Below are positions 1 to 18,462 of a stretch of 18,462 bases of DNA, one piece after another. Each line of letters opens with the position of its first letter. Within the stretch, counting starts at the first letter, position 1. The notes below the pieces were generated by a model. The model was not told the DNA's origin and did no database searches. It worked only from the letters and a program-made list of their open reading frames with translations. A program made the position numbers and the translations under genes. Source of the stretch: Paramoeba atlantica (Eukaryota; Protista; Discosea); the NCBI GenBank assembly GCA_977017575.1, contig CDRNVI010000126.1:1-18462 (forward strand), written 5' to 3'.

Positions 1-42
1 TTATTTCTTAATAAATCAACTTTTTTTCTCTTTTCTTTCTTT

Positions 43-1233
43 TTATATTATAGAAGATAAATACACTTTTCTAACATAACTCATTTTTACACCACAAACA
101 CCATACCGCATAATTAAAATAAACTGATTATAACTTAAAGGAGAATTTATATTACTTGGTGAAATAGCACCAAATTGTTTAATAAACTTTTTATTTCTTA
201 ACTTTTTTTTATATCTCCCTGCATAACCTATTTTAAAACCTATAATACCTCTTTCATTTTTTAATTTATTATGTAATAAATAAGCATAATGCTCTATTTT
301 ATAACCTACACGCAATCTTCATAAAATTAGCTTATATAAAGAATAAGTAGAATAATTTACTTCTTTTTTATCTATAAAATTAATTATAGGATTATTAACT
401 TTAAAAATTTTTTTTATAAAAAACGATAAAAAATTTTTTAATATAAAAATAAATTTTTTATCTAAAGTTAAATAATTAGTATTTTTAATATATTTTAATC
501 TATTTAATCAACGATTAGTTGGAATTCTTAATAAATTAAATCATTTATATTTAAAAATAAAATTGTTTAATCTTTTATTATTTTTATAAATATAAATATT
601 TTTATATTTATAAAAATATTTAAAATTATTAAAATTATTTATTGATTTTTTTTTTCATATATTTTTAAATATTTTCTTTCTATAAAACCCTCTACAAGAC
701 TTATTATAAAATAAATAATATTTATTATTATGCATGTCTCAAAAAAAATAATTAAATCAAACATATTTTTTATTTTTATAAAAATTTTTTCTTTTACTAT
801 AAAAAAATTTACGTAAAAAATTTAATATATATTTTTTTTTTTTTTTTTCTTTTAAAAAATTATATTTTTTTTTTCTTTTTGACTGTTTATACTTTAAAAA
901 AGATTTAAATATATATTTTTTTGACTGATTATAATATTTTTTTAATTTATATTTTTTTGACTTAATATCATTAATTAAAAATTTATTATCATCATTTAAT
1001 AAATTTAAATTTATTATCATCATTTTATATGTTTTAATTATATTTAACGGTAATATTTCTAAATTTAACTTGTTTCAATTAATTATAACTTTAATTCAAT
1101 TATAAAATTTAATAATATTATAATCTTCTAAAAAAAATAATTTATAATTTTTTTTTGTAATATTATTTCAAGACGAAATTCAATATTTACTTTTTGATAA
1201 TCTATATGTTATTGGATTAACTAAATGTCCCAT
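43..1233 (-). CDS. rps3: Ribosomal protein S3 (396 aa under code 4)
   Basis: Translated by hand as one open frame from ATG 1233 to TAA 43 with TGA=Trp. N-terminus MGHLVNPITYRLSKSKYWISSW matches the S3 start motif. C-terminal GFKIGYAGR...RYGVCGVK matches the S3_C domain. Joins supplied ORFs 43..315, 757..1023 and the end of 1180..1398. Confidence 0.9.
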
Positions 1234-1235
1234 AA

Positions 1236-1515
1236 TTATTTTTTCTTTTTCTTTATAACGTTTCTTTTTCTTTTTATCTTTTATTAATATATTTTTTGAA
1301 AAAAAAAAATAATTAATCATATAATTAACCATACTATCTATAATTTTAATTGGAATAAAATAACGACCATTATATACAGTTAATCTTTTATTAATCATAT
1401 AATTTTTTATTTTAAAACCTTTTACTTTTAACTTTAATCAAATAAATTTATCTATTTTTGAAAAATTTAAAAAATAAATAATATTTTTAATATTTTTAAT
1501 ATTATTTAAATTCAT
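1236..1515 (-). CDS. rps19: Ribosomal protein S19 (as sequenced it reads in frame into rps3)
   Basis: ATG 1515, then ...KFIW(TGA)LKLK...MINKRLTVYNGRYFIPIKIIDSMVNY, matching the S19 motif W...VHNG..PV.I...MVG. Lies between rpl2 and rps3. The expected TAA (1238-1236) is one base out of frame. Confidence 0.85.
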
Positions 1516-2244
1516 TTTTTTTTTTTTTCTTAGTTGTAGGTACAAATTTTAATACACGTCTTGTAAAATTTGGACAATCGACTCATGGAGAAGTTTTACC
1601 TCTACCACCACCATTAGGGTGATCTACACAATTTTTTGCTACACCTCTAACTGTTGATTTTTTACCTAATCTTATATTAACACCCGCTTTACCTTTTTTT
1701 ATTAAATTATGCCCTCTATTTGATACAATACCTATCATAGCTTTATTATATTTAAAAATTAATTTTTCTAAACCAGAAGGAAATCTTATTAAATAATAAT
1801 TTTCATTTATTTGTGATATTAATAAACAAAAAGAACCTGCAGATCTAGCTACTTTACTTCCTTTTTTTTTTTTTAATTCCATACAAGATATAAAAGAACC
1901 AAATTTTATATTTACTAAAGGATATGTAGAACCAACAATTTTATCTACTGAATTTAAAACCATACCTTCTTTCAAACCTTCGGCTGCTAAAATATAAGAT
2001 AAAAATCCATTTTTATAACATATTAAAGCTATATTTGCAGATCATTAGGATCATACTCAATTCTTAATACCATTGCAGGTATATCAACGTAAGTTCTAAA
2101 AAAATCAATTAATCTATATTTCTTTTTAACTCTAGTTCCCTTTGATTTAACTGTTTTATGACCCATATTATTAACTCCTGCATAATTTTTTAAACCAAAT
2201 GTTAAATATTTTATTGTTTTTGACTGTTTTTTCCTTTTTAACAT
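1502..2244 (-). CDS. rpl2: Ribosomal protein L2, with one apparent 1-nt deletion at 2043/2044
   Basis: KYRLIDF, RIEYDPN, ARSAGS, VRGVAKNCVDHPNGGGRGK motifs. Adding one base restores DPN-RSANIALI. Reads through TGA 1585-1583 to TAA 1504-1502. Confidence 0.9.
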
Positions 2245-2247
2245 ATA

Positions 2248-2667
2248 TTATTTTTTTCTTTTAAATCTAATATTAGTATAATTTGCTTCTATTAATCTAT
2301 ACATATCATTTTTTTTTTTTATAGATAAACCTTTATTATTATATACATCTATTAATTCATTTTGAATACGTTCTTGAAATTTTCGCTCAGTTCTAGAATT
2401 AATAGATCTAACTATTAATTTAACAGAATATGGTATAGAATCTTTTGATTTTAAAATATGTGGTATTAATAATTTTTTACCTCCTACTTTTTTAATATAA
2501 CAAAACATTCTAATGAATATATTAGTTTCTATTTGTTTAAAAAAAGTATTTAAACAACCATATATTTTTTTTATATTAATAAAAATTTTCTCTAAACTTA
2601 ATATAATTCGTTGTTTTTTTCCTTTTCTTATTAATAATTGTATTAAATATTTTATTCAATTATTCAT
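2248..2667 (-). CDS. rps7: Ribosomal protein S7 (139 aa under code 4)
   Basis: ATG 2667, MNNW(TGA)IKYLIQLLIRKGKKQ, then ERIQNELIDVYNNKGLSIKKKNDMYRLIEAN, the S7 signature. Frame checked continuous with supplied ORF 2248..2508. Confidence 0.9.
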
Positions 2668-3070
2668 CTTTTAAAATCTTTCCTTCCTTCTTTTTTTTTT
2701 TCAAACCATATTTAGAACGACTTTTATTTCGTTCTTCACGTTCTCAATTACTAAAATCATATTTTCCTTTTATCAATTTATAACGTACACCTGGAATATC
2801 TCTAGCACGTCCTCCTCTAATCATAACAACTGAATATTTTTGTAAATTATGACCTTGACCTGGTATAACTGCTATTAATTTTTTACCTGTTGATAACCTT
2901 ATTTTTGCTACTTTTCTTTTAGCGGAATTTGGTTTCTTTGGACTAACACTATTTCTAATTTCAATACAAACACCTCTTTTTTGTGGACAAGAATCTAACA
3001 AAAGAACTTTTGTACGTCTTTTTTTTTTTACTCTGCCTTTATTTCTTATTAATTGATTTAACGAAGCCAT
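2660..3070 (-). CDS. rps12: Ribosomal protein S12 (136 aa under code 4)
   Basis: [39 protein letters not shown]. Continues past TGA 2746-2744 with [10 protein letters not shown] to TAA 2662-2660, overlapping the rps7 start by 8 nt. Confidence 0.95.
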
Positions 3071-3438
3071 AATTTATATTTAAATATTATTAACGTATTA
3101 ATAATTTTTTTTTCATAATTGAATTTCATTAATTCATTAAATAAATAATACTTTTTATTTAAATTTAATAACAAACTATTATTTATTTGTTCTAAAGTTC
3201 CTTTACTATATAATTTATTTTTATATCATAAAAATAATAATTCATCATTATTTAAAAGATTAGTAAAATAATCTTTAAAATATTTCTTATTAATAATTAG
3301 AAAATATTTAATATTAACAAAAATTTTATATAATAAATTAATATTAGATAAATTCATTATGTTTAAATAAATTTGTTCAAAATTATTAAACGATTTATAT
3401 TGATTTACATAAAAAAAAGCTATAATATTATTATTCAT
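3058..3438 (-). CDS. 126-aa ORF between rpl11 and rps12, probably a divergent ribosomal protein L10
   Basis: Open from ATG 3438 to TAA 3060-3058 under code 4. Position matches the bacterial rpl11-(rpl1)-rpl10...rps12 order. Sequence resemblance to L10 is only weak. Confidence 0.5.
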
Positions 3439-3444
3439 ATTTTT

Positions 3445-3900
3445 TTATATAATTTTATTAATTTGTAAATTTGATATAGAAAAAAAACTATTTTTAAATC
3501 GCAATTTTATTCAATTTTGATTTAAATTATTATATAATTTAAATCAATAATAATTACGCAATATAACAATATCATATAGACTTCTTAATGTAATTGAATT
3601 TTCCATAATATTTTTATTAGTTAAACTCATAATATTTCAAACCAATTTTAATAAAGTACTAAAAGAAGGTCCTTTTATTAAAAAAACAAATGATTTATCA
3701 GTATATAAAAATAATCTAACATATATTAATAAATCTTCCGATCTATATATAAAAGTTTGTTTATTAAATTCATTACAAAATTCTTTGATTTTCTCTCTAT
3801 TCATATAAGGACTTAAATTAGGTCCTATATTTAAATTTTCAAAAGCGGCACCTCTAGAATTAATTCTTAAATTAAAAAATCGATTTAATTTTTTTTGCAT
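3445..3900 (-). CDS. rpl11: Ribosomal protein L11 (151 aa under code 4)
   Basis: IGPNLSP, KEFCNEFNKQT, YTDKSFVFLIKGPSFSTLLK and ITLRSLYDI match L11 motifs. Open through three TGA codons to TAA 3447-3445. Confidence 0.85.
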
Positions 3901-3933
3901 ATATATAATATTTAATATTATATTAATATTTGA

Positions 3934-5118
3934 TTAACGATCAACCTCCCCAAAAACTATATCTAAAGTACCTATAATAGTAACAACGTCGGCTATCATA
4001 TGTCCTTTTGATAATGTATCTAATAATTGTAAATGATTAAACCCTGGTGCTTTTATCTTACATCTTACCGGTCTATTTAATCCTCCCGAAACTAAAAAAA
4101 CACCAAATTCCCCTTTAGGAGCTTCTATAGATCTATAAACATCATTAAAAGGTATATTAACACCTTCTGTAAATAATTTAAAATGATGTATTAAAGATTC
4201 CATAGAAAACTTCATTAATGATCTTGAAGGTATAGTTAATTTATTATTGTAATTTGAAATAGGACCTTCTTTTAAATTATTTAAAAGTTGTAAAATTATT
4301 TTTAAACTCTCATGCATTTCTTTTAATCTAATTAAAAATCTATCAAAACAATCACCTTTATTTCCTATATAAGATTTAAAATCAACTTCATTATATAATT
4401 CATAAGGTTCACTTTTTCTAATATCTCAAGGAATACCAGATCCTCTTAAAATAACTCCACTACAACCTCAAGTTTGTGCTTGATTATAATCTAATATACC
4501 TACATCAACTAAACGTTGCTTTCATATTCTATTTCTATTTAATAATTCTTCCATTTCCATTAAAGAGTTAATAAAATTTTGTGTAAATTTATATAAATCA
4601 TCACAAAAAGACATAGGTATATCTTGACTAATACCTCCTGGTCTTATATATGCTGCATGCATTCTAGCACCTGATACCCTTTCGTAAAATTCCATTAATT
4701 TTTCACGTTCTTCAAAAAGTCATAAAAAAGGTGTCATCGCTCCAACATCTAACGCATGTGTAGTTAACCCTAAAATATGATTTAATATTCTAGTTATTTC
4801 ACCAAAAATCATACGTATCATCTTTGCTCTTATAGGTACATTAGTAGAACTTAAAGTTTCTACAGCTAATGAATAACAATGTTCTTGAGCCATCATAGAT
4901 ACATAATCTAATCTATCAAAATAAGGTAAAGCTTGTATAAAAGTCTTATATTCTATTAATTTTTCAGTACCTCTATGTAATAATCCTATATGAGGATCAG
5001 CTCTTTCTATAATTTCACCATTTAATTCTAATATTAATCTTAAAACTCCATGAGCTGCTGGATGCTGTGGTCCAAAATTAATTGTAAAAGTTTTTATTTT
5101 TTTAAATATTTTATTCAC
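3934..5118 (-). CDS. nad7: NADH dehydrogenase subunit 7 (49 kDa, NuoD), 394 aa, GTG start
   Basis: [64 protein letters not shown]. Hand translation is continuous with four TGA codons (TPFLW, NRIWKQR, TWGCSG, GIPWD). Confidence 0.97.
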
Positions 5119-5122
5119 GTTT

Positions 5123-5713
5123 TTAAAGTATATATTTTTTATTTAATAAAGGATTAGTAAAACTATATGATCTCATATTTTGCATTAATTCAATAGGCTC
5201 ATAAATCAAATATTGTTTATCTTCATCATACCTTATTTCTAAATAACCATTTAAAGGAAAATCTTTACGAAACGGATAACCTTCAAAACCATAATCGGTT
5301 AATATACGTCTTAAATCTTTATGACCCATGAAAAAAATACCATACATATCTCAAACTTCACGTTCTAACCAATCGGCACCTAAATAAATATCAGTAATAG
5401 ATCTTATAACATCTAATTTATCACAAGATACAGAAATAATTAATCTAGAATTATAATCTATACTTAATAAATTATAATCAATTTCAAAACGTTTAGCTCT
5501 ATCAATAAAATCACTACAGCAAATATCAGTTATTACCTTATATCTTAAAAAAGTATGCTTATTAAAAATATTTAAAACAAAACCTAAATAATCTTTTGAT
5601 ACTAATTTAATTTTAATAAATTCATCTGTTATTTTTATATGCGAAATATATTTAATTAGTAAATTTAATATATAATTTACAGCATAATTATTACTATTTT
5701 TTTTTAATAACAT
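5123..5713 (-). CDS. nad9: NADH dehydrogenase subunit 9 (30 kDa, NuoC), 196 aa
   Basis: [19 protein letters not shown](TGA)[31 protein letters not shown]. Joins supplied ORFs 5351..5713 and 5123..5347. Confidence 0.96.
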
Positions 5714-5725
5714 ATTTTTTTTTAT

Positions 5726-6049
5726 TTATAATATATATAATTTATATTTTTTAATATTACTAATTTTATATTTTAAAAATAGATTAAAAGGTGAAGTAAC
5801 AAAATATAATTGATTTAATCGTATATTTTTATACCTATAATATAATAAAAAACTTTCCATATTTAAATATTGTTTTTTATTAAAATTTATAATTAATCCT
5901 TTAATATTACGTATATATACATTCTTATATAATCAATAAAAATACTTTAATTCAATAGATATATTATTATTTAATTTTTTTTTATATTCTATAGATAATA
6001 AACTTAAAAAAGAATTATCTAAATAATTTATAATTTTTTTCTTTTTCAT
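5726..6049 (-). CDS. Unassigned 107-aa basic ORF
   Basis: ATG 6049 to TAA 5728-5726 with one TGA (Trp). Fills the space between rps11 and nad9 almost exactly. No motif recognised. Confidence 0.55.
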
Positions 6050-6052
6050 TTA

Positions 6053-6634
6053 TTATTTTCTTCTTCTCTTTTTCTTTCTTATACCATTATGAGCTTTTGA
6101 TTTTATAAAATTAATAAATTTTAAATTATAAGGTGTAGTCTCAAATAATTCTTTTAAATTTCTCAAAATTTTACGAGTATAATATTTATAAATTATATTT
6201 AATATGAATCATTTTTTCATATATAAATATTTAAAATCAATTTTTGAAGCTACAATTAATGAATTTAAAGCAAAATATGTTTTTTTTAATGATTTTTTAT
6301 AATAAAAACCACATGAAAAATTTTTTATTACATTACCATTAATATGCGAAAAATTTAAATAAGTATTTTTTCTAAATTTTAATATTAAATTAATAGTACA
6401 AAATTTCAAAGATAACCAATCTAATTTTGAACCCTTTAAAAAATTTTTTAGTATATTAATAAATAAATATCTTTTTTTAAAAAAAGATAATTTTGCTGCA
6501 TATATATACTTGCTTTTTAATTTTATATTAAACCTTTTTTTATATAATCAAGTAACTGAAGGTAATTTAAATCTATTAATTTTTATTAATTTAATTTTTC
6601 TATTTTTTATTAAACTTTCTTTTTTTTCAAACAT
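6053..6634 (-). CDS. rps11: Ribosomal protein S11 with Lys-rich N-terminal extension; start uncertain
   Basis: C-terminal KSKAHNGIRKKKRRR matches the S11 PHNGCRP.K.RR motif. Also RKNTYLNFSHINGNVIKNFSCG. Open from ATG 6634 to TAA 6055-6053 under code 4. Confidence 0.8.
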
Positions 6635-6751
6635 ATTTGTATTATTTCTTTCCTTAATTTTTCTATTTTTTTAAACTTTTTCTATTTTTTTAATTTTCTT
6701 TCTTTTTCTTTTTAATGATTCCATATATAATTAAATTTAATATAAGTTTTA

Positions 6752-6824
6752 TGTGGAGAATTGGGTTTGAACCAATGACCTAAAGCTTTTCAGGCTTTCG
6801 CTCTACCTACTGAGCTACCCCCAA
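6752..6824 (-). tRNA. trnF: tRNA-Phe(GAA)
   Basis: Cloverleaf folded by hand. Anticodon arm AAAGC-CTGAAAA-GCTTT. U1xC72 mismatch. Confidence 0.95.
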
Positions 6825-6857
6825 AAACTTTTTTTAATTACAAATTATTTTTTTATA

Positions 6858-6946
6858 AGGTAAGTATGGGATTCGAACCCATGATATTATATGAATAATA
6901 TATCGATTTAGCAGATCGACACCTTCAACCACTCGGTCAACTCACC
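6858..6946 (-). tRNA. trnS: tRNA-Ser(GCU)
   Basis: Anticodon arm TCGAT-CTGCTAA-ATCGA, long variable arm, fully paired acceptor stem. Confidence 0.93.
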
Positions 6947-6950
6947 TAAA

Positions 6951-7068
6951 ATATGATTTGTATTAATATAAATTATACACTCTTATAAAAAATTTTTACG
7001 AGAATATAATTTAATATATAATATTTTAAAGGGGTTCGATAAGCTTACCTTTAAAAAAATATAAATTT
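6951..7068 (-). ncRNA. Candidate divergent mitochondrial 5S rRNA
   Basis: About 120-nt spacer holding two hairpins: TTTTAAAGG-loop ending CGAAC(C)-CCTTTAAAA, like domain beta and loop C, and ATTATA...TATAAT with an internal loop, like domain gamma. Helix I could not be assigned with confidence. Confidence 0.5.
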
Positions 7069-8602
7069 ATTTTCCATCCAGCGGCAGGTTCCCCTACCAC
7101 TACCATGTTACGACTTCACCCTGATTACTATCAATACATTCAAATTAAATAATTAATAATATTTTATTAAAAATTAATTATCTCCAATAGATTAAAAATA
7201 ATTAATAAATATAAATTATTAATTATAATTTTTCCAATATTAACAACTTTCTTGGCGTGACGGGCAGTGTGTACTAGATTTGGATCCCATTTCACCGAAA
7301 CATTCTAATTTTCGATTACTGACGATTTCAACTTCATATTTTTATTTTCAAAAAATAATCCGAACTATAATAATCTTTATAATTTAAATAAATTTCACAA
7401 TTTATTTTTTTTTTGTAATTATTTTTGTAACACGTGTGTAGCCCAATTCATCAGGGCCATACCTACTTGACGTCCTCCTCTATTTCATTTAATATATAAT
7501 TAATAATACAATATAATAAAATATAATAATATAACATATAATAATATAACATATAATAATATAATAATATATCATATATTTTATTATATTGTAAGGATTA
7601 CACTCGTTACAGGACCTAACCATACATATCACTACACGAGCTGACGACAGCCATGCGACACCTGCTTAAAAAAATTATATAAAGTTTACTATATTTATTA
7701 TAATTTTTTTCAATCTAGAATTGGTAAGATTTTATGCGTTATATCAGATTAAACCACATGTTCCACCGTTCGTACCAAATCTCAGCCACTTTCTTTGAGT
7801 TCAAATCTTGCGATCATACTCCCCAGGCGGGATGCTTACGCGTTAGCTAAACCACAAAAATATTTCCTACAGTTAGCATCCATCGTTGTCTGTATGGACT
7901 ACAAGGGTCTCTAATCCTCTTTGATACCCATACCTTCGTACTTTAGTGTCAGTATAAATCTAATATATAGCTTTCACCTTCTGATAGTCTCCATAGTATC
8001 ATAAAATTTCACCTTTCCTCTATGAATACTATATATCTGAATAATACTCTTAGTTTACTAATATATAATTTATTCATTATTACTAATAACGCCTTTAAAA
8101 TTATATTATTAAAAAATAAACCACTTATCATACGCTTTACGCCCAGTAATGCTGAGTAACACCCGCATCCTCCGTATCACCGCGACTGCTGGCACGAAGT
8201 TAGTCGATGCTTATTCTTAAGTTTAACCTCATTATGCTCACTTAAACAAGAATTTTTCAATAAATTGTCATAATTCAGGTAGTTTCGCTGAATCAAGCTT
8301 TCGCTCATTGTTCAATATTCCTCACTGCTGCCTCCTAATGGAACTTGGGCCTTTTCTCATTCCCAATGTGGTTGTACCTCCTTCTAAGATCAACTAAGAA
8401 TTATCGGCTTGTTAGTCTATTACACCTCCAACTACCTAAATCTTTATAAACCAGTTTATAATATAAACATAATTATAAGTCCCGTTTTTATATATTACTC
8501 ACCCTTACGCCATTAATTTTAAATTTTAAATTTTAATTGACTAGCATGTGTTAAGCGAACTACTAGCATTTACTCAAAGCCAGAATAAAACATACAAGTA
8601 TT
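7069..8602 (-). rRNA. rns: Mitochondrial small-subunit rRNA (ends approximate)
   Basis: Minus strand has TTCTGGCT...AACACATGCTAGTC near the 5' end, GTGCCAGCAGTCGCGGT (530 loop), TAGTACACACTGCCCGTCA and AAGTCGTAACATGGTA near the 3' end. Confidence 0.97.
7521..7565. repeat. 15-bp tandem repeat x3 (ATATAATAATATAAC) inside rns
   Basis: Two exact copies at 7521-7535 and 7536-7550, and a third with one mismatch at 7551-7565. Confidence 0.8.
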
Positions 8603-8663
8603 TATATATAATATATTATATATTATATAATTTACATAAATTTTTTCCTTTTTTTTTATATTA

Positions 8664-8752
8664 AGATTATGGTGGGATTCGAACCCACGGTATAATTAAA
8701 ATTATACGATCCTTTTCAAGAGGATTACTTTAAACCACTCAGCCACATAAAC
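8664..8752 (-). tRNA. trnS: tRNA-Ser(UGA)
   Basis: Anticodon arm ATCCT-CTTGAAA-AGGAT, long variable arm. U2xU71 mismatch. Confidence 0.93.
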
Positions 8753-8766
8753 TTATTTTTATACAA

Positions 8767-8839
8767 CGACCTGGGCAGGATTCGAACCTACATCTGATTG
8801 GTTAACAGCCAATTATTTTACCATTGAAACTACCAAGTA
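8767..8839 (-). tRNA. trnN: tRNA-Asn(GUU)
   Basis: Anticodon arm ATTGG-CTGTTAA-CCAAT. U1xC72 mismatch. Confidence 0.94.
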
Positions 8840-8971
8840 TTGTTTTACAAATTACAAACTTTAATTTAAAGTTTGTTGTTTTATTACATATAATATTTTC
8901 AAAATATTATATATTTTATTTTTTCTTATATAGAAATTTTTTTTCTTTTTTCTTTTTTCTTTTTATAAATT

Positions 8972-10709
8972 AGATTGATTCTTAAAATTATTTAGCTCAA
9001 TCCTTCACAGGACTTACACACATAACTTAATTTCGTAATAATCTTTTACAATCAATACTTTTAAAATATTTTAGGATAATCTTCTTATATCTGATTGAAT
9101 TCAATAATTATATTATTAATATTTAGCTACTCGACTATGCAATTATAATTACAACCGATTTACCAGTGATATTCCTTCTCCAGTCCTTTCGTACTAAGAT
9201 AAGATTCCTTCAATTTTAATTAATTAATAGTAGATAGGAACCGAACTGTCTCACGACGTTCTGAACCCAATTCAGGTGCCACTTTAAAAGGCGAACAGCC
9301 TTACCCTTGGAACATTTTTCTTAACCAGGATGTGACCAATCGACATCGAGGTGCCAAACAACCCCGTCGATATCTTCTCTCCGGAGTCATAAGCCTGTTA
9401 TCCCTAGCGTACCTTTTATCCGTTGAGCAATATATTTTCCATTCAATTATATTGGATCACTATGACCGACCTTTTTAATAAAAAAGATCTCTGTTTGATT
9501 TGTAAATCTCACAGTTAAGTAATTTTTAGCCATTACACGCCAAAATTTTCTAATAAAATTTTAATTACCTTTGTACACCTCAGTTACATTTTATGAGGTC
9601 TCCGCCCCAGAGAAACTACCAAATATATTCTGTCAATAAAAAATTATTAAGTTTTAAAAATTAAATTCAAACTATTCCAAGATTATCTAAACAATTAACT
9701 AATATTAAAATTTTAAAACGATTAGTTTGTATCCTATAAATTTAATTTTTAATAACAAAATATAACTGCAGTAAAGGTGCATAGGGTCTTTCCGTCTAGC
9801 TATTAATACGCTGCATCTGCACAGAGAATTCAATTTCGCTAATATAATACCGGAGACAGTAGGATAGTCGTTACACCATTCATGCAAGGTCGAAACTTAC
9901 TCGACAAGGAATTTCGCTACCTTCGAACCGTTATATTTACAGCTGCCGTTTACTATTCATTCTATATAAAGCTAATACATTAAATAATATATTAACAATA
10001 ACAATTACCTTTATAGCACCGGGCAGGTGTCAGACCTTATACATCATTAATTAATTTTGCAAAGTCCTGTGTTTTTGTTAAACAGTCGCCATCCTCTATT
10101 CTGTTACATTTTTATATACATATAATGTATATATAAAAATACTCTTTCTCCCGAAGTTACAGAGTTAATTTGCCGAGTTCCTTCGATATTATTCAATTAT
10201 TCATCTTAGTATTCTCTACTAATCCTCCTGTGTAGGATTTAGTACGGTTTTATATATTAGTATTCTTTCTTGAATTTATTTTTTAAATATTTCAATCAAT
10301 ATATTCGAATATATCACACAATGTTTTACTATATTTATTAAAATTTGATCCTAAAATATTTAAAAAATAAACTGTCATCTACTAATAACGTTAAAAATAT
10401 TATGTTATCCTTATAACTCTTTAACTACCCTTCAATTATTACTATCATATTCATTTTAGGGACCGATTAACCTAATGCAGTTTATCTTGACATTAGAAAC
10501 CTTAGATTTTTAGATGATAATGTTTATAACATTATTTTTGCTACTTATGCCAGTATATTCAATTTTAATTTTATAATTTAACAATTTTTTTTTTCTTTTA
10601 TAAAACGTTCTACTACCAATATTATTATTTTAAATAATATTTTATAATTTCGGTATAATATTTATTTTCGTTATATTTTTGTATATAAATATCTATCAAT
10701 AGTGAGCTG

Positions 10710-10743
<34 letters not shown>

Positions 10744-11740
10744 CTACCTCCTATTCATTGTTAATATTATAATATACTTTTTAACTTAATATTAATTTAG
10801 AAACCTTAATTTATAATCTGGGCTCTTTCCCTCTTGATATACAACCTTTTCGCCATATATCGAAATTAAAATTTTTACTTTAATTTATTTGAAGTTCATA
10901 TGGATTCAACAACCCAATATGGTAGCTCTACCTTATATAAATTTAAATTTCATCTCTACTTAAATAGATTTCGTAGAAAACCAGCTATCTCCAAGTTTGA
11001 TTAGCCTTTCACCCCTAATCATAGGTCATCCCAATATATTGCAACATAAACGGGTTCGATCCTCCATTAATATTTAATTAACTTCAATCTGCCCATGACT
11101 AGATCACTTGGTTTCGGGTCTAATTATTATAACTATAAATATATTAATTACAATTAAAAAATTTAATAATTTTTTATTTTGCTACAATAATTAACTCACT
11201 GACCCATTATGCAAAAGGTACCTTTTAACATATAATTATTTATGCTTAAAGTGCTATTTAGTATTAAATTTCAAAATCTATTTCAACATTTTTAAAAAAT
11301 TTCTTTTCATCTTTCCTTCACAGTACTTTTTCACTATCGCTCAATAATAATTCTTTAGCCTTTAGAGATGGTACTCTAATCTTCAAACAAATTTAGTTTT
11401 TATTTTACTCAAAACCAATAATAATAATAAAAAATAACAAGACTATTACTTATTTTGTTAATTATTCCAAATTATTATATTTTTTATTTATATTATTGTT
11501 TAATTTAGCTATTTTATTTTCGCTCGCCACTACTAATAATATCATTTTTATTTTTTTTAACTAATTACTAAGATGATTCAATTCATTAGATATTCTTTAA
11601 TTATTTAATTTAATTGGGTTTTCCCTTTAGATACGTGAATATTGAAAAATTATTATTATTTTACTTTCACATTACGTTTTAAAACGTCTATAAACTTATT
11701 ATTGGCAAGATATCCGTTTAATACTATTTTAAATTTATAA
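8972..11740 (-). rRNA. rnl: Mitochondrial large-subunit rRNA (ends approximate, no intron evident)
   Basis: The plus strand shows complements of conserved 23S blocks: ccgaactgtctcacgacgttctgaaccca, cgacatcgaggtgccaaac, cctgttatccctagcgtacc, gacaaggaatttcgctacctt, accagctatctccaagtttgattagcctttcaccc. Length of about 2.77 kb leaves no room for an intron. Confidence 0.97.
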
Positions 11741-11799
11741 AAAAATTTTAAAATGATTTGTTTAAAAATTATTCAACATTATTATATATTTTAATCAAA

Positions 11800-11880
11800 T
11801 GGAAGTGGTAGGATTCGAACCTACGATGTATAAATACAATAGATTTACAGTCTACCGCTTTACCGCTCAGCCACACTATA
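11800..11880 (-). tRNA. trnY: tRNA-Tyr(GUA)
   Basis: Anticodon arm GTAGA-CTGTAAA-TCTAT. Acceptor TATAGTG/CACTTCC is mismatched at positions 1-3. Confidence 0.94.
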
Positions 11881-11888
11881 AAAAATTA

Positions 11889-11962
11889 TAATTGGTATAG
11901 GACTCGAACCTATATCTAATGATTTAGAAGATCATAATTTTAACCAATTAAACTAACCAATT
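11889..11962 (-). tRNA. trnR: tRNA-Arg(UCU)
   Basis: Anticodon arm ATGAT-CTTCTAA-ATCAT. Acceptor AATTGGT/ACCAATT fully paired. Confidence 0.94.
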
Positions 11963-11989
11963 AAATACAAAACAACAAAAATAGGTTGA

Positions 11990-12229
11990 TTAAGTATATA
12001 AGATTAAGAAAGCCATCATTAGGGCAAACAGAGCAATTGCTTCTGTTAATGCGAAACCTAATAAAGTATAACCAAATAAATCGTTTTTAATTGTAGTATT
12101 ACGTGAATAAGCAATTAAAAAAGCTCCAAAAACTATTCCTATACCTACTCCAGCACCTGCTAAACCTATAGTAGCTAAACCAGCACCTACTTTTTTTGCA
12201 AAAATTAACATAATTTCTTGTCCTGCCAT
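11990..12229 (-). CDS. atp9: ATP synthase subunit c (subunit 9)
   Basis: [21 protein letters not shown] and [21 protein letters not shown] with the catalytic Glu. Confidence 0.97.
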
Positions 12230-12328
12230 TTTCGAAAATATTTTTATACATATATTTTACTAATTAATAAAAATTCAAAATTGATTACATATTCAAATGT
12301 AATCCATAATAATATTTACGTAATTATA

Positions 12329-12401
12329 TAAGAAGAGTAGGACTCGAACCTACATCTGTGGCTCATGAGACCACTGAGTTAACCTATTACTCCATCTTAA
12401 A
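12329..12401 (-). tRNA. trnM: tRNA-Met(CAU), possibly initiator
   Basis: Anticodon arm GTGGT-CTCATGA-GCCAC. A11:U24 pair as in initiator tRNAs. Acceptor TTTAAGA/TCTTCTT is mismatched at positions 1-3. Confidence 0.9.
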
Positions 12402-12419
12402 AAATAATTAACTCATCGT

Positions 12420-12502
12420 TATTGGAGGAGGGACTCGAACCCTCAAGCCTAAAAGGCAATAGATTTTAAGTCTATCATGTTTACCAATTCCATCACACCA
12501 TT
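12420..12502 (-). tRNA. trnL: tRNA-Leu(UAA)
   Basis: Anticodon arm ATAGA-CTTAAAA-TCTAT, long variable arm. Mismatches A2xA71 and U6xU67. Confidence 0.92.
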
Positions 12503-12511
12503 AAAAAATAA

Positions 12512-12652
12512 TTAATAAAAATTTTTTGTATATGAAAATAAAAATATTATCTCTTATACAAACCCCCCAAACCCCCCTTATTATATGTGACAAATAATAT
12601 ACTTAAATCAGTGTATAATAGATTTCAAAAATTTACAAAAAAATTTTATTAA
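12512..12652. repeat. 19-bp inverted repeat (18/19 match) enclosing a tandem (AAACCCCCC)2 tract
   Basis: Arms at 12512-12530 and 12634-12652. C6 tracts at 12563-12568 and 12572-12577. Confidence 0.65.
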
Positions 12653-12678
12653 ATTAAATTAATACGGATAAAATAATT

Positions 12679-12750
12679 TCATTTCTAAGGGATTTGAACC
12701 CTTATTTCTGCTGTGAAAGAGCAATGTCCTAACCATTAGACGAAGAAAAA
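12679..12750 (-). tRNA. trnE: tRNA-Glu(UUC)
   Basis: Anticodon arm TTGCT-CTTTCAC-AGCAG. U2xU71 mismatch and U1:G72 wobble. Confidence 0.93.
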
Positions 12751-13055
12751 TAAATCATATATTATTAAAGTAAGATATATCTAAAATAAATAATCATATT
12801 AATTTACTAATTTTTTATTTTATTAAAAAAATAAAATCTTTTTAAATTACTATAATTATTTATTTTATAATTTTTTTCTCTTTTTAAAAAAATTTTAAAG
12901 TAAAATATGTATGTTTTATGACTGTTATTTCATATGGTAAATGTACATTTTATCATAAATTGATATAATAGATATAATAGATAATATTTTATATTTTATA
13001 TACAAAACATCTTGATTATATAGTAATAAAATAAACATATTTTATTATATTTTTA

Positions 13056-13129
13056 TGCGGAGGAAGGGATTCGAACCCTCATCTTTTAACTCGACAGGTT
13101 AAAGCTTTAGCCTATTAAGCTACCTCCTT
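13056..13129 (-). tRNA. trnD: tRNA-Asp(GUC)
   Basis: Anticodon arm TTAAC-CTGTCGA-GTTAA. Acceptor AAGGAGG/CCTCCGC is mismatched at 1 and 2. Confidence 0.94.
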
Positions 13130-13142
13130 GTTATTATAATTA

Positions 13143-13213
13143 TCAGGACGATAGGATTTGAACCTATAACGTCTACACCCAAAATAGATATTTTACCTTT
13201 AAACTACATCCTT
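13143..13213 (-). tRNA. trnP: tRNA-Pro(UGG)
   Basis: Anticodon loop TTTGGGT. A1xG72 mismatch. Confidence 0.93.
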
Positions 13214-13247
13214 ATAAAAAATATTTTTTCTTTTTTTATACATACAA

Positions 13248-13321
13248 TACAGATGAGGGGACTCGAACCCCTAAAATTTAGTGCCTAAAACTAATATGTC
13301 TACCAATTCCATCACATCTAT
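13248..13321 (-). tRNA. trnL: tRNA-Leu(UAG), short variable loop
   Basis: Anticodon arm TTAGT-TTTAGGC-ACTAA. D-arm resembles trnL(UAA). Variable region is only ATTTT. Confidence 0.88.
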
Positions 13322-13387
13322 CTTTACAAATTAATAAAAAAATTTTAATAAAATATATATTTTATTAATTTTATTATTCTTAATTTA

Positions 13388-13460
13388 GGTAAGAAATGAG
13401 ACTTGAACTCATACTATCGAAATCACAACTCGATGTGCTAACCTATTACACCATTCCATA
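13388..13460 (-). tRNA. trnH: tRNA-His(GUG)
   Basis: Anticodon loop TTGTGAT, C73. Acceptor TATGGAA/TTCTTAC is mismatched at 1-3. Genomic -1 base is A, not G. Confidence 0.93.
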
Positions 13461-13466
13461 TTTTTA

Positions 13467-13539
13467 TAGATAGTATAGGGCTCGAACCTATAACCCTCAG
13501 CTTAAAAGGCCGATGCTCTACCAATTGAGCTAACTATTT
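13467..13539 (-). tRNA. trnK: tRNA-Lys(UUU)
   Basis: Anticodon arm TCGGC-CTTTTAA-GCTGA. A2xC71 mismatch. Confidence 0.95.
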
Positions 13540-13548
13540 TTTTATTTA

Positions 13549-13621
13549 TAACCCCAGATAGACTCGAACTATCAATTTGCACTTATCAAATGCATGTTTT
13601 AACCAATTAAACTATAGGTAT
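13549..13621 (-). tRNA. trnI: tRNA-Ile(GAU)
   Basis: Anticodon arm TGCAT-TTGATAA-GTGCA. Mismatches U2xU71 and A3xG70. Confidence 0.93.
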
Positions 13622-13648
13622 TTATTATATTTATATTAAATTTAAAAA

Positions 13649-13720
13649 AGTTAGGAACGGACTCGAACCGATATCTATAGATTTGCAATCAATTATAATA
13701 ACCATTTATACTATCCTTAA
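13649..13720 (-). tRNA. trnC: tRNA-Cys(GCA)
   Basis: Anticodon loop TTGCAAA, U73. The T-stem 3' side appears to lack one base (CCGT for CCGAT). In that register positions 1 and 3 are mismatched. Confidence 0.85.
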
Positions 13721-13734
13721 AAAAAATTTTTAAT

Positions 13735-13805
13735 ACTTAGGAGTAGGACTCGAACCTACACGATTTGCTGCCAAAAAACAATACTTACCTTTCAGTCACC
13801 CTATT
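13735..13805 (-). tRNA. trnQ: tRNA-Gln(UUG)
   Basis: Anticodon arm TTGTT-TTTTGGC-AGCAA. Acceptor AATAGGG/TCCTAAG is mismatched at 1 and 2. Confidence 0.92.
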
Positions 13806-13837
13806 TTATTATATTTAATTATATCATCTATAATTAA

Positions 13838-13909
13838 CACAGTTGATAGGATTTGAACCTATGTCATTAGTTTTGAAGACTAATATGTTAACCACTACAC
13901 TACAACTAT
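13838..13909 (-). tRNA. trnW: tRNA-Trp(UCA), UGA-decoding
   Basis: Anticodon arm TTAGT-CTTCAAA-ACTAA, G73, acceptor ATAGTTG/CAACTGT. No long arm, so it is not tRNA-Sec. Confidence 0.94.
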
Positions 13910-13912
13910 TTA

Positions 13913-14392
13913 TCCATCTTTATTGGTGAGCAAGCTGTTACTCAGGGCTTAGCCGATAACATCAACACATTCGATAACTTGCTTGCTGGATTTCAACAGC
14001 AAACTTCTCAACCCATTTATTCATACTCACAGGAGACATCTACTATGACTGAGAAAACATCTGAAAATACTGTATCAATCGATGCAGCAAATTTACTAGA
14101 AAAAGGCAAAGTGCAAGAACACGCTCGCATCCAAGCTATCTTAACCTGTAGGGCAGCTGAGCATCGAGAAAAGTTAGCACAACACCTGGCATTTGCGACC
14201 AACATGGATGTCGAGCTTGCAAAACAAACGTTAGCGTCTGCACCGACATCATCATCGCAAACAACCGATACCACTGGCTTTCAAGCGGCAATGAATAAAC
14301 TTGATAACCCTGACATTGTGCCAAGCAGTGCATCGGATAATGAAGAGAGTGAAGAGATTGACTCGGTTGTTAAACGTATCGCGAGTTATTAA
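13913..14392 (+). CDS. C-terminal part of phage S49 head-maturation protease/scaffold (lambda gpC/Nu3-like), 5' truncated at the junction
   Basis: Frame upstream of the supplied ORF reads SIFIGEQAVTQGLADNINTFDNLL, the end of an S49 domain. EHARIQAILTC...EKLAQHLAFATNMDVELAKQTLASAP resembles the scaffold domain. Confidence 0.85.
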   Translation, partial: SIFIGEQAVTQGLADNINTFDNLLAGFQQQTSQPIYSYSQETSTMTEKTSENTVSIDAANLLEKGKVQEHARIQAILTCRAAEHREKLAQHLAFATNMDVELAKQTLASAPTSSSQTTDTTGFQAAMNKLDNPDIVPSSASDNEESEEIDSVVKRIASY

Positions 14393-14492
14393 TGGCACTT
14401 TGGATAATCGCATTTCTATTAATTAAGCGGAGGAAACCAACATGAGCGCAAAAGGCTTTACTGACCAGGGGTCAATTACCCCCGATAATTTA

Positions 14493-15056
14493 TAGTCCTC
14501 TAAATGGTTAAAACCCCCGTCTTCCAGACGGGAAAATCTTCAGATCTTGTTGTATGATGTGGGCATGGGCAACTATACGCACAGTCACCATACGGGTCTA
14601 CCACCATCGATACCACATTGTTTGGGTAACGAAGTATCGTTATAAAGTTTTGCAAGGTGAGCTACGTCTTCGCGTTCGTGCTCTTGTAGCGCAAGTAGCT
14701 GAGGAAATGGGGGTTGAAATACTCAATGGAGTATTGTCAACAGAGCACATCCATCTTTTTGTTAGTATTCCACCGCATATTTCAGTAAGTGATTTTGTTA
14801 AAAAGGCAAAGGGTCGTTCATCGCGCAAAATCCAGCAAGAGTTTCCTAGTATTCGCAAACGCTATTGGGGCAGGCATTTTTGGGGTCGTGGGATATTTTA
14901 GTAGCACAAGTGGCAATGTAACAGATGATATCATTATGCTTACATTGATAATCATGTTGATGCTCATAAAGTGGATTATGAATCGAATATGTCTTTAGAC
15001 TGATACCGGCTTCAGCCTAGATCTCCAACCCACCAACTTCTAGTTGGTGTGGTTGA
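14493..15056 (+). mobile_element. IS200/IS605-family insertion sequence (tnpA only), about 564 bp
   Basis: Left hairpin CCCGTC-TTCCA-GACGGG and right hairpin CACCAACT-TCT-AGTTGGTG. No terminal inverted repeats or target duplication. Excision restores the decoration gene frame. Confidence 0.9.
14565..15003 (+). CDS. tnpA: Y1 (HUH) transposase TnpA with three apparent 1-nt indels
   Basis: YHHRYHIVWVTKYRYKVL, HUH motif EHIHLFV, KGRSSRKIQQEFP, FWGRGYFSSTSGNVTDDIIMAYID after correcting indels near 14594, 14891 and 14937. Stop TGA 15001-15003. Confidence 0.9.
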
Positions 15057-15393
15057 GTTGCAGGGGAATTCCCTTGCGTACAACGTACAGAGACTATCAC
15101 TGGCGGTATGAAGTTACCCCGTGGTGCGGTGTTAGGCCGCATCAACGACTCGGGCCTTTTTACATTAAGTAAATTACGTGCCGGTGATGGCTCCCAACTC
15201 CCCGTCGCCATCTTGGCTGAAGACTGTGATGCCACCAGCGATACCCAAGCGGTGGTCTATCACGCAGGAGAATTCAATGCCAAAGCCTTAACCTATGGTG
15301 AGGGTCATACAGTTAAGTCGGTATGGGAGGCTCGACGCGCGGCAGCAGGTAACAACACCTTATTTCTACGTAATAATCAAGAGGCTTAACCCT

Positions 15394-16323
15394 ATGGATA
15401 TCTTTTCCACCTTTGTTTAAATCGCACGATTGAATGTTTAGCGCGTTCATCATCATTTTTGTAGATACTTTCTTTACTTCTGTGCAAATGGAAGAAAGTG
15501 CGGAAATTCATTTTTGATATTAATGATCTAAGCCACGGCTAGCGCCCTTCGTCTCTCCACTGGTAGCCGGTAAGTCGTTGATGCACAAGGCTACAGCACC
15601 CAAAGTTTTAGACCCGCTATGTGAAAGATAAACGCCGCTTTGATGCCAATACACCGCTTAAACGTGTGATTGGAGAGACCATCGGTGGCAGTCTTCCGGC
15701 TAACCGACGGTTAGAAGCCGCTATTAGCAAAGCATTGCGTGACCAATTAGAAAACTTAACCCGTCGTGAAGAAGTGATGGCAGCCGAAGTGTTAACCAAA
15801 GGCACCGTCACCGTATCTGGCGACAATTACCCAACGCAAGTGGTTGACTTCAAACGTGACCCGAAGCTCACCATTAAACTCTCAGGCAATAATGATAAGT
15901 GGAGCAATCCAGAATCGCCTGCACTTGACCAGTTAGAAGATTGGGCCAGCTTGATTCAAGAAAAATCCGGAGCCGTGGCGCGACGTGTTATCCTTGACCC
16001 TAAAGCCTGGCGGTTATTACGCAAGAACAAACAAATCATTGCGCAGCTTGATATTCGTCGTGGCACCAATGTGACATTGGATACAGACCCAATGGGTCGT
16101 GGCCAAGGCAATGAAAAGCACGGTATGTTGGCTCTATTGGTGACTTTGATTTCCATGTTTACAATGACGTCTATGTGGATGATGAGAATTCCGTACAACA
16201 TTTGTTACCTGACTATACGGTATTACTGGTCAGCCAACAAAACTTAGAAGGCACACGGTGTTATGGCATGATACGAGATGAAAAAGGCAGACTTTCGGGC
16301 AATGCGTTATTTCAGCAAAAGTT
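15394..16323 (+). pseudogene. Phage major capsid protein E family, multiply frameshifted and truncated by IS66
   Basis: Reconstructed MDIFST...FLLDTFF...APFVSPLVAGKVV...FRPAYVKDKRRFD, LTRREEVMAAEVL, VVDFKRD, and ...AMRYFSKS(W) cut at 16323. Confidence 0.85.
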
Positions 16324-16520
16324 GTATGCTTCCAGTAACGTTGCGTGACGATGTTGCATTTACCAATTATTCTGTGTAGGGCAATTTGTTTTTAACATTT
16401 TGCCTGTTGCAATTTTTCTTCTATGTAATTTATCTGCCCTTGCAATTTGCATTAATGGGATCAGACTTGCCTCTAGGTTAAGTTATGGTGACTGACCGAT
16501 GTAAGCAACAGGGATTATTT

Positions 16521-18151
16521 ATGAAGAAACCAGAAACGATCGATTTAAGTCATGCGGAGGCAGAGTCGTTACTGTCACGACTTGAAACTGGCGACTATCA
16601 GAGAGTGATCGGAAAGTATGTAGCAGTGCATTGCGCATGGTATTTGGCTGCAAGGCCAATTAATCGAAGCAAGCTGAGTATCCGACGATGAAGAGGTTAT
16701 TCGGAATACGTAGCGAAAAAAAGGGTTAACGGGTACATCGACGTCATCCAGCGCTTGTGACAAAGAGCCAAAGCAAACTGACACTGTTAAGGAAACAGAT
16801 GTCCCCAAGGAGAAAAACAAAGGGCATGGGCGTCATGGAGCGGATGATTATGTTGCTGCAGAGGTTATCAAAGTGACAGATGAACGTTACTACTTCAGGG
16901 GCACCCTGCCTGCATATTGATTGCCAAGGTCGTTTGTATTTATGGAATAAACCATCAAAGGTGATCCGTTTGTTAGGTCAAACCGATGGCGCGCGTTGTG
17001 CGTTATGACCGAGAAGTCTATCGTTGCGGATTGTGTTTAACCTTATTTACCGTGCCATTACCCAAAGAGTGTGGCAAAGCGGTCTATAGCGATAGTTTCA
17101 AAGCGGTATTAGCGGTGAACCATTATGTTTTTGGTTTGCCCTTTTATCGCATAGCGAAGTACCACGAAGCGCAAGGTATTCCTCTGCCAAACATCGAATC
17201 AATTTGCGTGTATGGAAGAGATATTTAATCAGGTACTACCGGTTATCAAGCCTTACAACCGTTGCGGCTAATGGTGAGTTGATTCAATTTGATGACACAA
17301 CAGCGAAGGTACAAAGTTTATTATTAGAGAACCAGCAACTAGATGAGAAAGCGCGCCGTGGCATATTTACCACAGCGTCGATATCAAACGTCGGCGACAA
17401 TAAAAGTGGTCCTGGTTTTCACAGGACGCTCGCATGCTGGAGAGAATATCACAGCACTGCTTGAGAAACGTGATGCTCAATTAACAGATGTTATTTTAAT
17501 GTCAGATGCACTGAGTCGAAACCGCATTAAAGAAGAAGCCATCGCTGAGCAGACTCACGTCAGCTATTGCTTGGCCCATGCCAGACGCTATTTTTTCGAG
17601 TGTAAAGACGTTTATCCCAAGGTGTGTCAACCGGTGTTAGAGTGGATTGGCCAGGTGTATCAACACGAGCGTCATTGTAAAGCTAATGGCTATACACCAG
17701 AGCAACGTCTGCATTATCATCGCCGTCACTCCAAGCCAGTGATGAAACGGTTGCGCCGATTTTGGATAAGTGCATTAGAAAACGCTGGGCAGAACCTAAC
17801 AGTAGTGGTGGTAAAGCCATCAACTATATGCGCAAACATTTTCAACCGCTAACGTTATTTTTATCGGTACCCGGGGCCATTATAGACAATAACGACACGG
17901 AACGTTTAATTAAGATTGCGCCGGTAATGTACCGTAAGAATTCGCAACAATATCGTACAACGTATGGTGCCATGATTGGCGATGCATTAATGAGCCTATT
18001 ATTCACGGCACAATATGCCGGTGTTGACCCGGTGGATTATTTGCAAAGCATGTTGTTATATAAAGACGAATTAGGGGATTGTGCTACGGATTGGTTGCCT
18101 TGGTGTTATAAGGAGACCCTCAATACCGAGACATTAGCCAAAGCGGCTTAG
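16521..18151 (+). pseudogene. tnpC: IS66 DDE transposase TnpC, fragmented by many single-base indels
   Basis: Fragments carry YRCGLC, LPFYR, IQFDDT, MSDALSRN, CLAHARRYF, KAINYM, IDNNDTERLIK, SLLFTAQYAGVDPVDYL. Ends TAG 18149-18151. Confidence 0.88.
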
Positions 18152-18462
18152 GCGGCTTTGGCAGGCAGGGGGTTTCCAATGTTGTTGACAATTAGCTGTA
18201 ATGGGGTTGCCGTTGTACAGCAAGATGTTTAGCGTGCTTGCTGTTAGTTGGATCGTGTCATTGTTATCTTGCGGCCACCATTGAAGTCGTCGCTAGAAAG
18301 TCGTTTATGACACAGCCAGAAACCTTGGCCATCGTAAGTGAGCAGTTTGATAGCATTACGACGACGATTAGTAAAAACAAATACCGTGCCATTAAAGGGT
18401 TACTACCCATTTTAGCTTGGCAAAGTCTGCATAAACCTTCGATACCGGCTCTGAAGTCAACT
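18148..18462 (-). pseudogene. tnpB: IS66 accessory protein TnpB, 5' end outside the window, frameshifted
   Basis: Minus strand reconstructs to VDFRAGIEGLCRLC...PFNGTVFVFTNRRRNAIKLLTYDGQGFWLCHKRLSSGRLQWWP, the TnpB_IS66 signature. Three indel corrections needed. Not in the supplied ORF track. Confidence 0.88.

Follow-up and report, generated by a model that had tools for sequence, protein, structure and literature searches.

Organization of the window

The window, by which we mean the whole stretch of 18,462 nucleotides that was analyzed, is composed of two parts, mitochondrial DNA at 1-13915 and bacterial prophage and IS DNA at 13917-18462 (Table 1). The organelle identity ends at 13915 and the bacterial identity begins at 13917, and the two parent genomes described below jointly explain every base from position 1992 onward except 13916. 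The parts differ in composition (GC 0.228, i.e., 22.8%, for 1-13915 versus 0.446, i.e., 44.6%, for 13917-18462), in coding strand, since the organelle genes are all located on the minus strand and the phage genes of 13917-18462 on the plus strand, and in genetic code. The organelle parent reads TGA as Trp: of its 16 called genes, 15 contain between 1 and 13 in-frame TGA codons (the exception is atp9), TGG codons total 4, and translation with code 4 leaves the called genes free of stops. The bacterial parent uses TGG for Trp throughout (87 times, with 0 in-frame TGA codons), and TGA terminates 2 of 13 genes.

The original prediction, made from the letters of the window, had described all three of these shifts at the junction, and each of them is borne out by comparison with the parents. 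Its placement of the switch within about 4 nt of trnW was correct as to the abruptness of the change, but the organelle DNA extends for 6 nt, to 13915, and includes a spacer and a piece of trnM. Likewise, the phage gene that it saw entered in mid-frame from 13913 is an S49 gene as proposed, but the bacterial identity starts at 13917.

Table 1. Annotated features of the window, and differences from the parent genomes in its consecutive segments
Feature	Position	Strand	Evidence or remark
Amoebozoan mitochondrial segment	1-13915	-	L008 identity, Rfam, ARAGORN, code 4 ORFs, Pfam
SSU rRNA, mitochondrial	7066-8601	-	Rfam RF00177, 716.2 bits
LSU rRNA, mitochondrial	8961-11740	-	Rfam RF02541, 1311.7 bits
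trnC(GCA)	13652-13717 (L008 8515-8588)	-	Rfam only, 34 bits in the window
trnW(UCA)	13838-13909	-	ARAGORN; Rfam tRNA, 69.4 bits; equals L008 8327-8398
trnM(CAU) remnant, last 5 nt of the 3' end	13911-13915	-	L008 followed down to 8321
Orphan base A	13916		C in the mitogenome, G in the chromosome (three-way comparison)
S49 head-maturation protease/scaffold, 3' part	13917-14392	+	Identical to L001 10002-10477
IS200/IS605-family insertion	14494-15057	+	tnpA 14565-15003; PF01797, 119 bits
Head decoration protein, lambda D family	15108-15389	+	PF02924, 57.4 bits; 0 differences from parent
Major capsid protein, lambda E family	15394-16379	+	PF03864, 72.5 bits (longest piece)
IS66-family transposase tnpC	16873-18151	+	PF03050 on three pieces
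IS66 tnpB, cut at the end of the window	18148-18462	-	Parent L010 13050-13412 (-), PF05717
Organelle segment	1992-12526		2 differences in 10,535 (0.019%)
Organelle segment adjoining the join	12527-13915		10 differences in 1,389 (0.72%)
Bacterial segment	13917-18462		32 differences in 4,566 (0.70%)
Low-accuracy stretch across the junction	12527-18462		42 differences in 5,955 bases, 40 of them one-base indels

The mitochondrial part and its parent genome

An exact look-up of the organelle atp9 led to the mitochondrial parent, ctg3923c of the assembly ERZ24900291, a circular mitogenome of 39,429 bp that is labelled here as locus L008. The comparison with L008 covers 1992-13915 of the window, since L008 ends there; the identity is 99.90%, and the only differences are 12 one-base indels, mismatches numbering 0. 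At 1-1991 the gene order rpl2-rps19-rps3 is the order expected.

Besides the LSU and SSU rRNA genes, both of which are full-length and of bacterial type, the organelle part encodes 17 tRNAs called by ARAGORN as well as trnC, recognized by Rfam only. The ORFs read in code 4 within 1-13915 correspond to rpl2, rps7, rps12, rpl11, nad7, nad9, and atp9, and weak matches to rps19 and rps3, both under the Pfam cut-offs, are found at the left end. The gene order along the minus strand is (trnM remnant)-trnW-trnQ-trnC-trnI-trnK-trnH-trnL-trnP-trnD-trnE-trnL-trnM-atp9, followed by trnR-trnY-LSU rRNA-trnN-trnS-SSU rRNA-trnS-trnF and two ORFs, and then by nad9-nad7-rpl11-ORF-rps12-rps7-rpl2-rps19-rps3. 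One open frame of 501 codons under code 4, at 46-1548 of the minus strand, spans the weak matches to rps19 and rps3, which could be fused here or overlap. The AT-rich ORFs of 193, 107, and 126 aa, as well as an 88-aa piece at 757-1023, gave no Pfam match.

The last complete organelle gene ahead of the junction is trnW(UCA). ARAGORN labels this tRNA, with the anticodon tca, as 'SeC' because the program assumes the bacterial code. It made no trnC(GCA) call in the window and a clean call in the closed mitogenome, and the miss is likely due to a one-base indel error at 13657.

The origin of the organelle from an amoeba, as originally predicted, is supported by the atp1 gene of the parent, for which the best named match is Paramoeba pemaquidensis (Amoebozoa, Discosea) with 80% identity, as compared to near 60% for Alphaproteobacteria and other eukaryotes. 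The set of features by which an amoebozoan mitogenome is recognized was also found, namely rpl11, rps7, rps12, rpl2, nad7, nad9, atp1, and atp9, carried on one strand and read in code 4. The organelle is accordingly an amoebozoan mitochondrion, with an approximate placement inside Amoebozoa. The 90%-identity cluster of its atp9 contains no named protein, and cluster look-ups likewise yielded no names for most atp1 relatives. The mitogenome occurs in five public datasets, with depths as low as about 2x; those returned by the atp1 look-up are ERZ24900291, ERZ24894578, ERZ26167977, ERZ26867466, and the Logan run ERR14835898.

The bacterial part: a prophage remnant with IS elements

The bacterial parent was reached by scanning bacterial genomes with the protease fragment. 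It is OZ220716.1 (identical with ctg4025c of ERZ24900291), a circular chromosome of 2,447,832 bp, recorded as a MAG of a Gammaproteobacteria bacterium and placed to class level. Seven paralogous copies of the protease locus (L001-L007) were found, all of them in OZ220716.1, and 13917-18462 is 99.30% identical to one of them, L001, which has the same IS200 and IS66 insertions. The degree of identity and the common insertions indicate that L001 and the bacterial part of the window are the same locus. Phage and plasmid nucleotide searches with the bacterial side revealed no parent, only the IS200 part being matched, and the exact decoration protein is recorded only on the 2.45-Mb chromosome. The lambda-like head modules of OZ220716.1, seven in number, are located between 1.07 and 2.10 Mb, and the C-terminal part of the protease in L001-L007 shows 70-99% amino-acid identity to that of the window.

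The protease fragment begins inside codon 236 of 393 and comprises approximately the 28 last residues of the S49 domain together with a scaffold-like tail. Pfam yielded no match for this 160-aa fragment alone because only those residues of the domain remain. The fragment corresponds to the last 158 codons of the 393-aa parent protein with zero differences. The parent gene is intact (L001 9296-10477), and its product matches PF01343 Peptidase_S49 with 89.5 bits (cut-off 24.9) over residues 126-264, as well as SppA/protease 4 in the PDB (3bez) with E=4e-21. The residues of the catalytic Ser/Lys dyad would lie upstream of the portion contained in the window. By tblastn the fragment matches 219 phage records, in which the annotation is head maturation protease or C/Nu3. 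At 14030-14047 an AGGAG box precedes an ATG (14045) that is in frame and lies 115 codons ahead of the S49 stop; by analogy with lambda C/Nu3 this ATG would be a putative nested scaffold start.

The parent locus resembles the head module of lambda, which consists of terminase gpA, gpW, portal gpB, protease/scaffold C/Nu3, decoration protein D, and capsid protein E, in both gene order and Pfam families (GpA_ATPase, gpW, Phage_portal_2, Peptidase_S49, HDPD, and Phage_cap_E). Upstream of the protease gene L001 carries the terminase, gpW, and portal genes, the last interrupted once by one IS, and in the loci L010 and L011 the protease gene sits between the portal and the decoration/capsid genes. 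Unlike lambda, the parent locus is a remnant: an IS sits in the portal gene, IS200 separates the protease gene from D, and the capsid gene is followed by IS66 in place of the head-tail and tail genes of paralogous copies; one such copy, L011, retains head-tail and tail-tube genes.

The IS200/IS605 insertion is present in the parent locus and not in the six paralogous prophage copies. In five of these (L002-L004, L006, and L007) the stretches that align to 13919-14493 and to 15058-16328 adjoin each other in the coordinates of the copy, and in L005 the second aligned stretch begins only at 15186. The element shares about 70% nucleotide identity with copies in phage WO of Wolbachia (wVitA) and with copies on 'Ca. 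Megaera polyxenophila' plasmids; both bacteria live inside the cells of eukaryotes.

Structure of the join

In the closed mitogenome the sequence beyond trnW continues into trnM, located at 8252-8325 of L008 and 1 nt from trnW, and then into cox1; the rest of trnM and the cox1 gene beyond it are absent from the window. On the other side, the protease gene runs uninterrupted across the junction point in the bacterial chromosome. The microhomology at the join is 0, the common suffix and the common prefix of the parents at the break both being 0, and the 1-kb flanks of the two parents show no similarity beyond chance 9-10-mers. No direct or inverted repeat, att core repeat, IS end, or duplication was found at the join, no N gap is present there, and no integrase is encoded in the window. 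The cut points are arbitrary, with neither homology nor repeat to guide them: the mitochondrial break falls within the 3' end of trnM, and the bacterial one splits codon 236 of the protease gene. The orphan A between them could be a dA tail from end repair; the idea is weak, since half of the possible bases would fit on one strand or the other. The join resembles nothing that site-specific integration, transposition, or homology-guided recombination would leave. The joining of the two parts by an IS was also considered and rejected, given that no IS end lies at the join and the nearest IS begins 577 nt away from it.

Error profile across the junction

The window differs from its two parents at 44 positions, comprising 42 one-base indels and 2 substitutions. 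A spectrum so dominated by indels indicates sequencing error and not evolution. The differences are distributed very unevenly (Table 1): their frequency rises at 12527, well inside the mitochondrial part (Fisher test, p=2e-8), and does not change across the junction (p=1.0), so that 12527-18462 has an accuracy of about Q21.5 throughout. The rate in 1992-12526 is comparable to that at which two independent mitogenome assemblies differ from each other (0.011%). The step is not due to sequence context, as homopolymer runs are 2.7 times commoner on the mitochondrial side. A contig of the same bacterium from another assembly, at 2x depth, is 99.98% accurate, so that an error rate of 0.7% calls for an unusually poor read or an unpolished tail, which is a point against the chimeric-read explanation given below. 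Since the first 12.5 kb are far more accurate than the rest, the window must represent a consensus instead of a raw read.

The same errors account for the damaged appearance of several genes on the bacterial side. The IS200 tnpA gene carries 3 one-base indels relative to an intact 145-aa parent gene, the capsid gene, which reads as broken, carries 8 relative to an intact 329-aa parent gene, and IS66 tnpC, which also reads as broken, has 7 one-base indels and 2 substitutions relative to an intact 425-aa parent. With the parent genes intact, the apparent pseudogenes (IS200 tnpA, capsid E, and IS66 tnpC) are products of sequencing errors. A 70-aa ORF on the bacterial side contains 4 indels and IS66 tnpB 3 one-base indels versus the parent, and the protease part and the decoration gene show 0 differences.

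The junction in other assemblies

Within one assembly, ERZ24900291, each parent forms a closed circle of its own, and the junction is found in neither of them. Among the other contigs on record that carry the atp9 of this mitogenome, all four have cox1 within 3.5 kb, beside the tRNA cluster, and none of the four (0/4) has bacterial DNA beside that cluster. The 36-nt junction sequence was not found in the JGI metagenome and IMG/VR collections, and a scan of IMG/VR did not find the intact bacterial sequence across the junction point either. Exact look-ups with two ORFs specific to the window (14554-14901 and 14045-14392) gave no match, those with atp9 and the decoration protein returned only contigs other than that of the window, and the accession numbers did not turn up in the literature searched. 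The window itself contains a single junction, with neither a second recipient flank nor a reciprocal junction.

Origin of the junction

Separate closed parents, a blunt join, and an error rate that spans the junction uphold the view expressed in the original prediction that a chimeric long read or a misjoin is the likeliest cause; as that prediction also stated, the junction shows neither integrase nor att repeat, IS end, or microhomology. The identity of the parents and their intactness elsewhere are matters of observation, as are the bluntness of the join and the error profile. From the sequence comparisons we consider it very probable that the junction is an artefact, namely a chimeric long read carried into the assembly, and not a gene transfer. 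Chimeric long reads that stitch together distinct genomes are a described cause of chimeric metagenome assemblies (10.1101/2025.09.05.674543).

In the most likely course of events, sheared mitochondrial and gammaproteobacterial fragments would have been ligated end to end during library preparation and then read as one chimeric long-read molecule. The assembler would have extended the well-supported mitochondrial contig with that read as a dangling extension, crossing the join about 1.4 kb past the point where other reads stop. The extension would thus be an unpolished tail of about 6 kb, made of about 1.4 kb of mitochondrial sequence, the orphan base, and 4.5 kb of degraded lambda-like prophage. 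That a single read supported the junction we infer from the error profile, and ligation is its presumed origin.

The join resembles the chimeras that arise by ligation of fragments in PacBio and ONT libraries in that it connects unrelated genomes abruptly, free of homology and at arbitrary positions, and also in that it is covered at read-level accuracy only and the true replicons assemble separately. It differs from the described chimeric reads in being known as assembled sequence and not as a read. Chimeras produced by MDA likewise give rise to artefactual joins in the long reads of protist samples with small input (10.64898/2026.06.11.730069). Those are mostly inverted joins between nearby regions of one template, unlike the present case, in which two different genomes are connected.

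The junction could also have been made by the assembler or scaffolder as a misjoin of two contigs in the graph, with no chimeric read involved. A misjoin was named as possible in the original prediction, and the window is indeed a consensus, far more accurate over its first 12.5 kb, both of which speak for such an event. We nevertheless regard this origin as very unlikely. A graph misjoin requires shared sequence, and the parents share 0 bases at the break and only chance-level matches in the flanks; no N gap marks the place where contigs would have been scaffolded; and the low-accuracy stretch begins about 1.4 kb ahead of the join and passes across it unchanged, which fits one physical read crossing the join and disagrees with the abutting of two consensus sequences.

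Even less probable is a real and very recent transfer, either of mitochondrial DNA by illegitimate recombination into a prophage remnant of a minority of the bacteria or of bacterial DNA into a minority of the mitochondrial genomes, caught by one read. The two organisms occur in the same sample, the features that the bacterium shares with host-associated bacteria make proximity inside the amoeba conceivable, and blunt joins free of homology also arise by end joining. On the other hand, in that sample the prevailing form of each genome is free of the junction, as are the four other atp9-bearing mitogenome contigs. One junction only is seen, with no second recipient flank, it shows no substitution divergence, and it lies inside the stretch with read-level errors. 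Moreover, library chimeras are far more frequent than DNA transfers between organelles and bacteria. A NUMT-like insertion or a transfer between a protist and its endosymbiont would likewise place organelle DNA next to foreign DNA in a homology-free manner. Such real insertions, however, have two recipient flanks, independent reads or assemblies, and accumulated substitutions, none of which accompanies the present join. The particular form of transfer in which mitochondrial DNA was end-joined, very recently and at low frequency, into a prophage remnant carried by an intracellular gammaproteobacterium, or vice versa, seems a slim prospect, less probable again; if true, it would mean direct DNA traffic between an organelle and a symbiont within one cell. 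The suggestion of a remarkable transfer, offered in the original prediction as an alternative, thus found no support.

Site-specific phage integration with the 3' end of trnM or trnW as attB is next to inconceivable and can be regarded as refuted, since the parent gene is intact and no core sequence is shared. The break does fall within a tRNA gene, 5 nt from its 3' end, the classic position of phage attachment sites, but the phage side starts in the middle of the head protease gene and not at an attP beside an integrase, the window contains neither an integrase nor an att core repeat, the tRNA 3' end is not regenerated, and the phage gene is continuous across the join point in the bacterial chromosome.

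With the junction read as a library chimera, its value is that of quality control; as a biological claim it does not stand. A contig of this kind is open to misreading as an organelle-to-bacterium transfer, as a 'viral' contig with mitochondrial genes, or as a prophage filled with pseudogenes. The comparison of each side with a closed parent replicon, combined with an indel-only error stretch that spans the join, provides a diagnostic that works independently of the reads.

Co-occurrence of the amoeba and the bacterium

The co-occurring bacterium postulated in the original prediction does exist, as both genomes are present in ERZ24900291 and in the Logan run ERR14835898, which may represent the same sample. 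For a chimera, what the join demonstrates is only that both DNAs were in one preparation. A sample shared by a discosean-like amoeba and a gammaproteobacterium rich in IS elements and prophages is a lead and not evidence of symbiosis, and to call the bacterium endosymbiotic would be a guess. The genome of this bacterium is rich in IS elements and contains, apart from the seven prophage head modules, a gene for a protein with Sel1, kinase, and SH3 domains; these features are compatible with a host-associated life but do not demonstrate it.

The gene for this 1321-aa protein (L010:15687-19652, OZ220716.1) lies downstream of the prophage remnant, at a distance of about 6 kb. The protein combines six Sel1 repeats with three SH3 domains and a Tyr/Ser-Thr protein kinase domain of eukaryote type (206 bits), a eukaryote-like architecture such as also occurs in effectors that intracellular bacteria produce.
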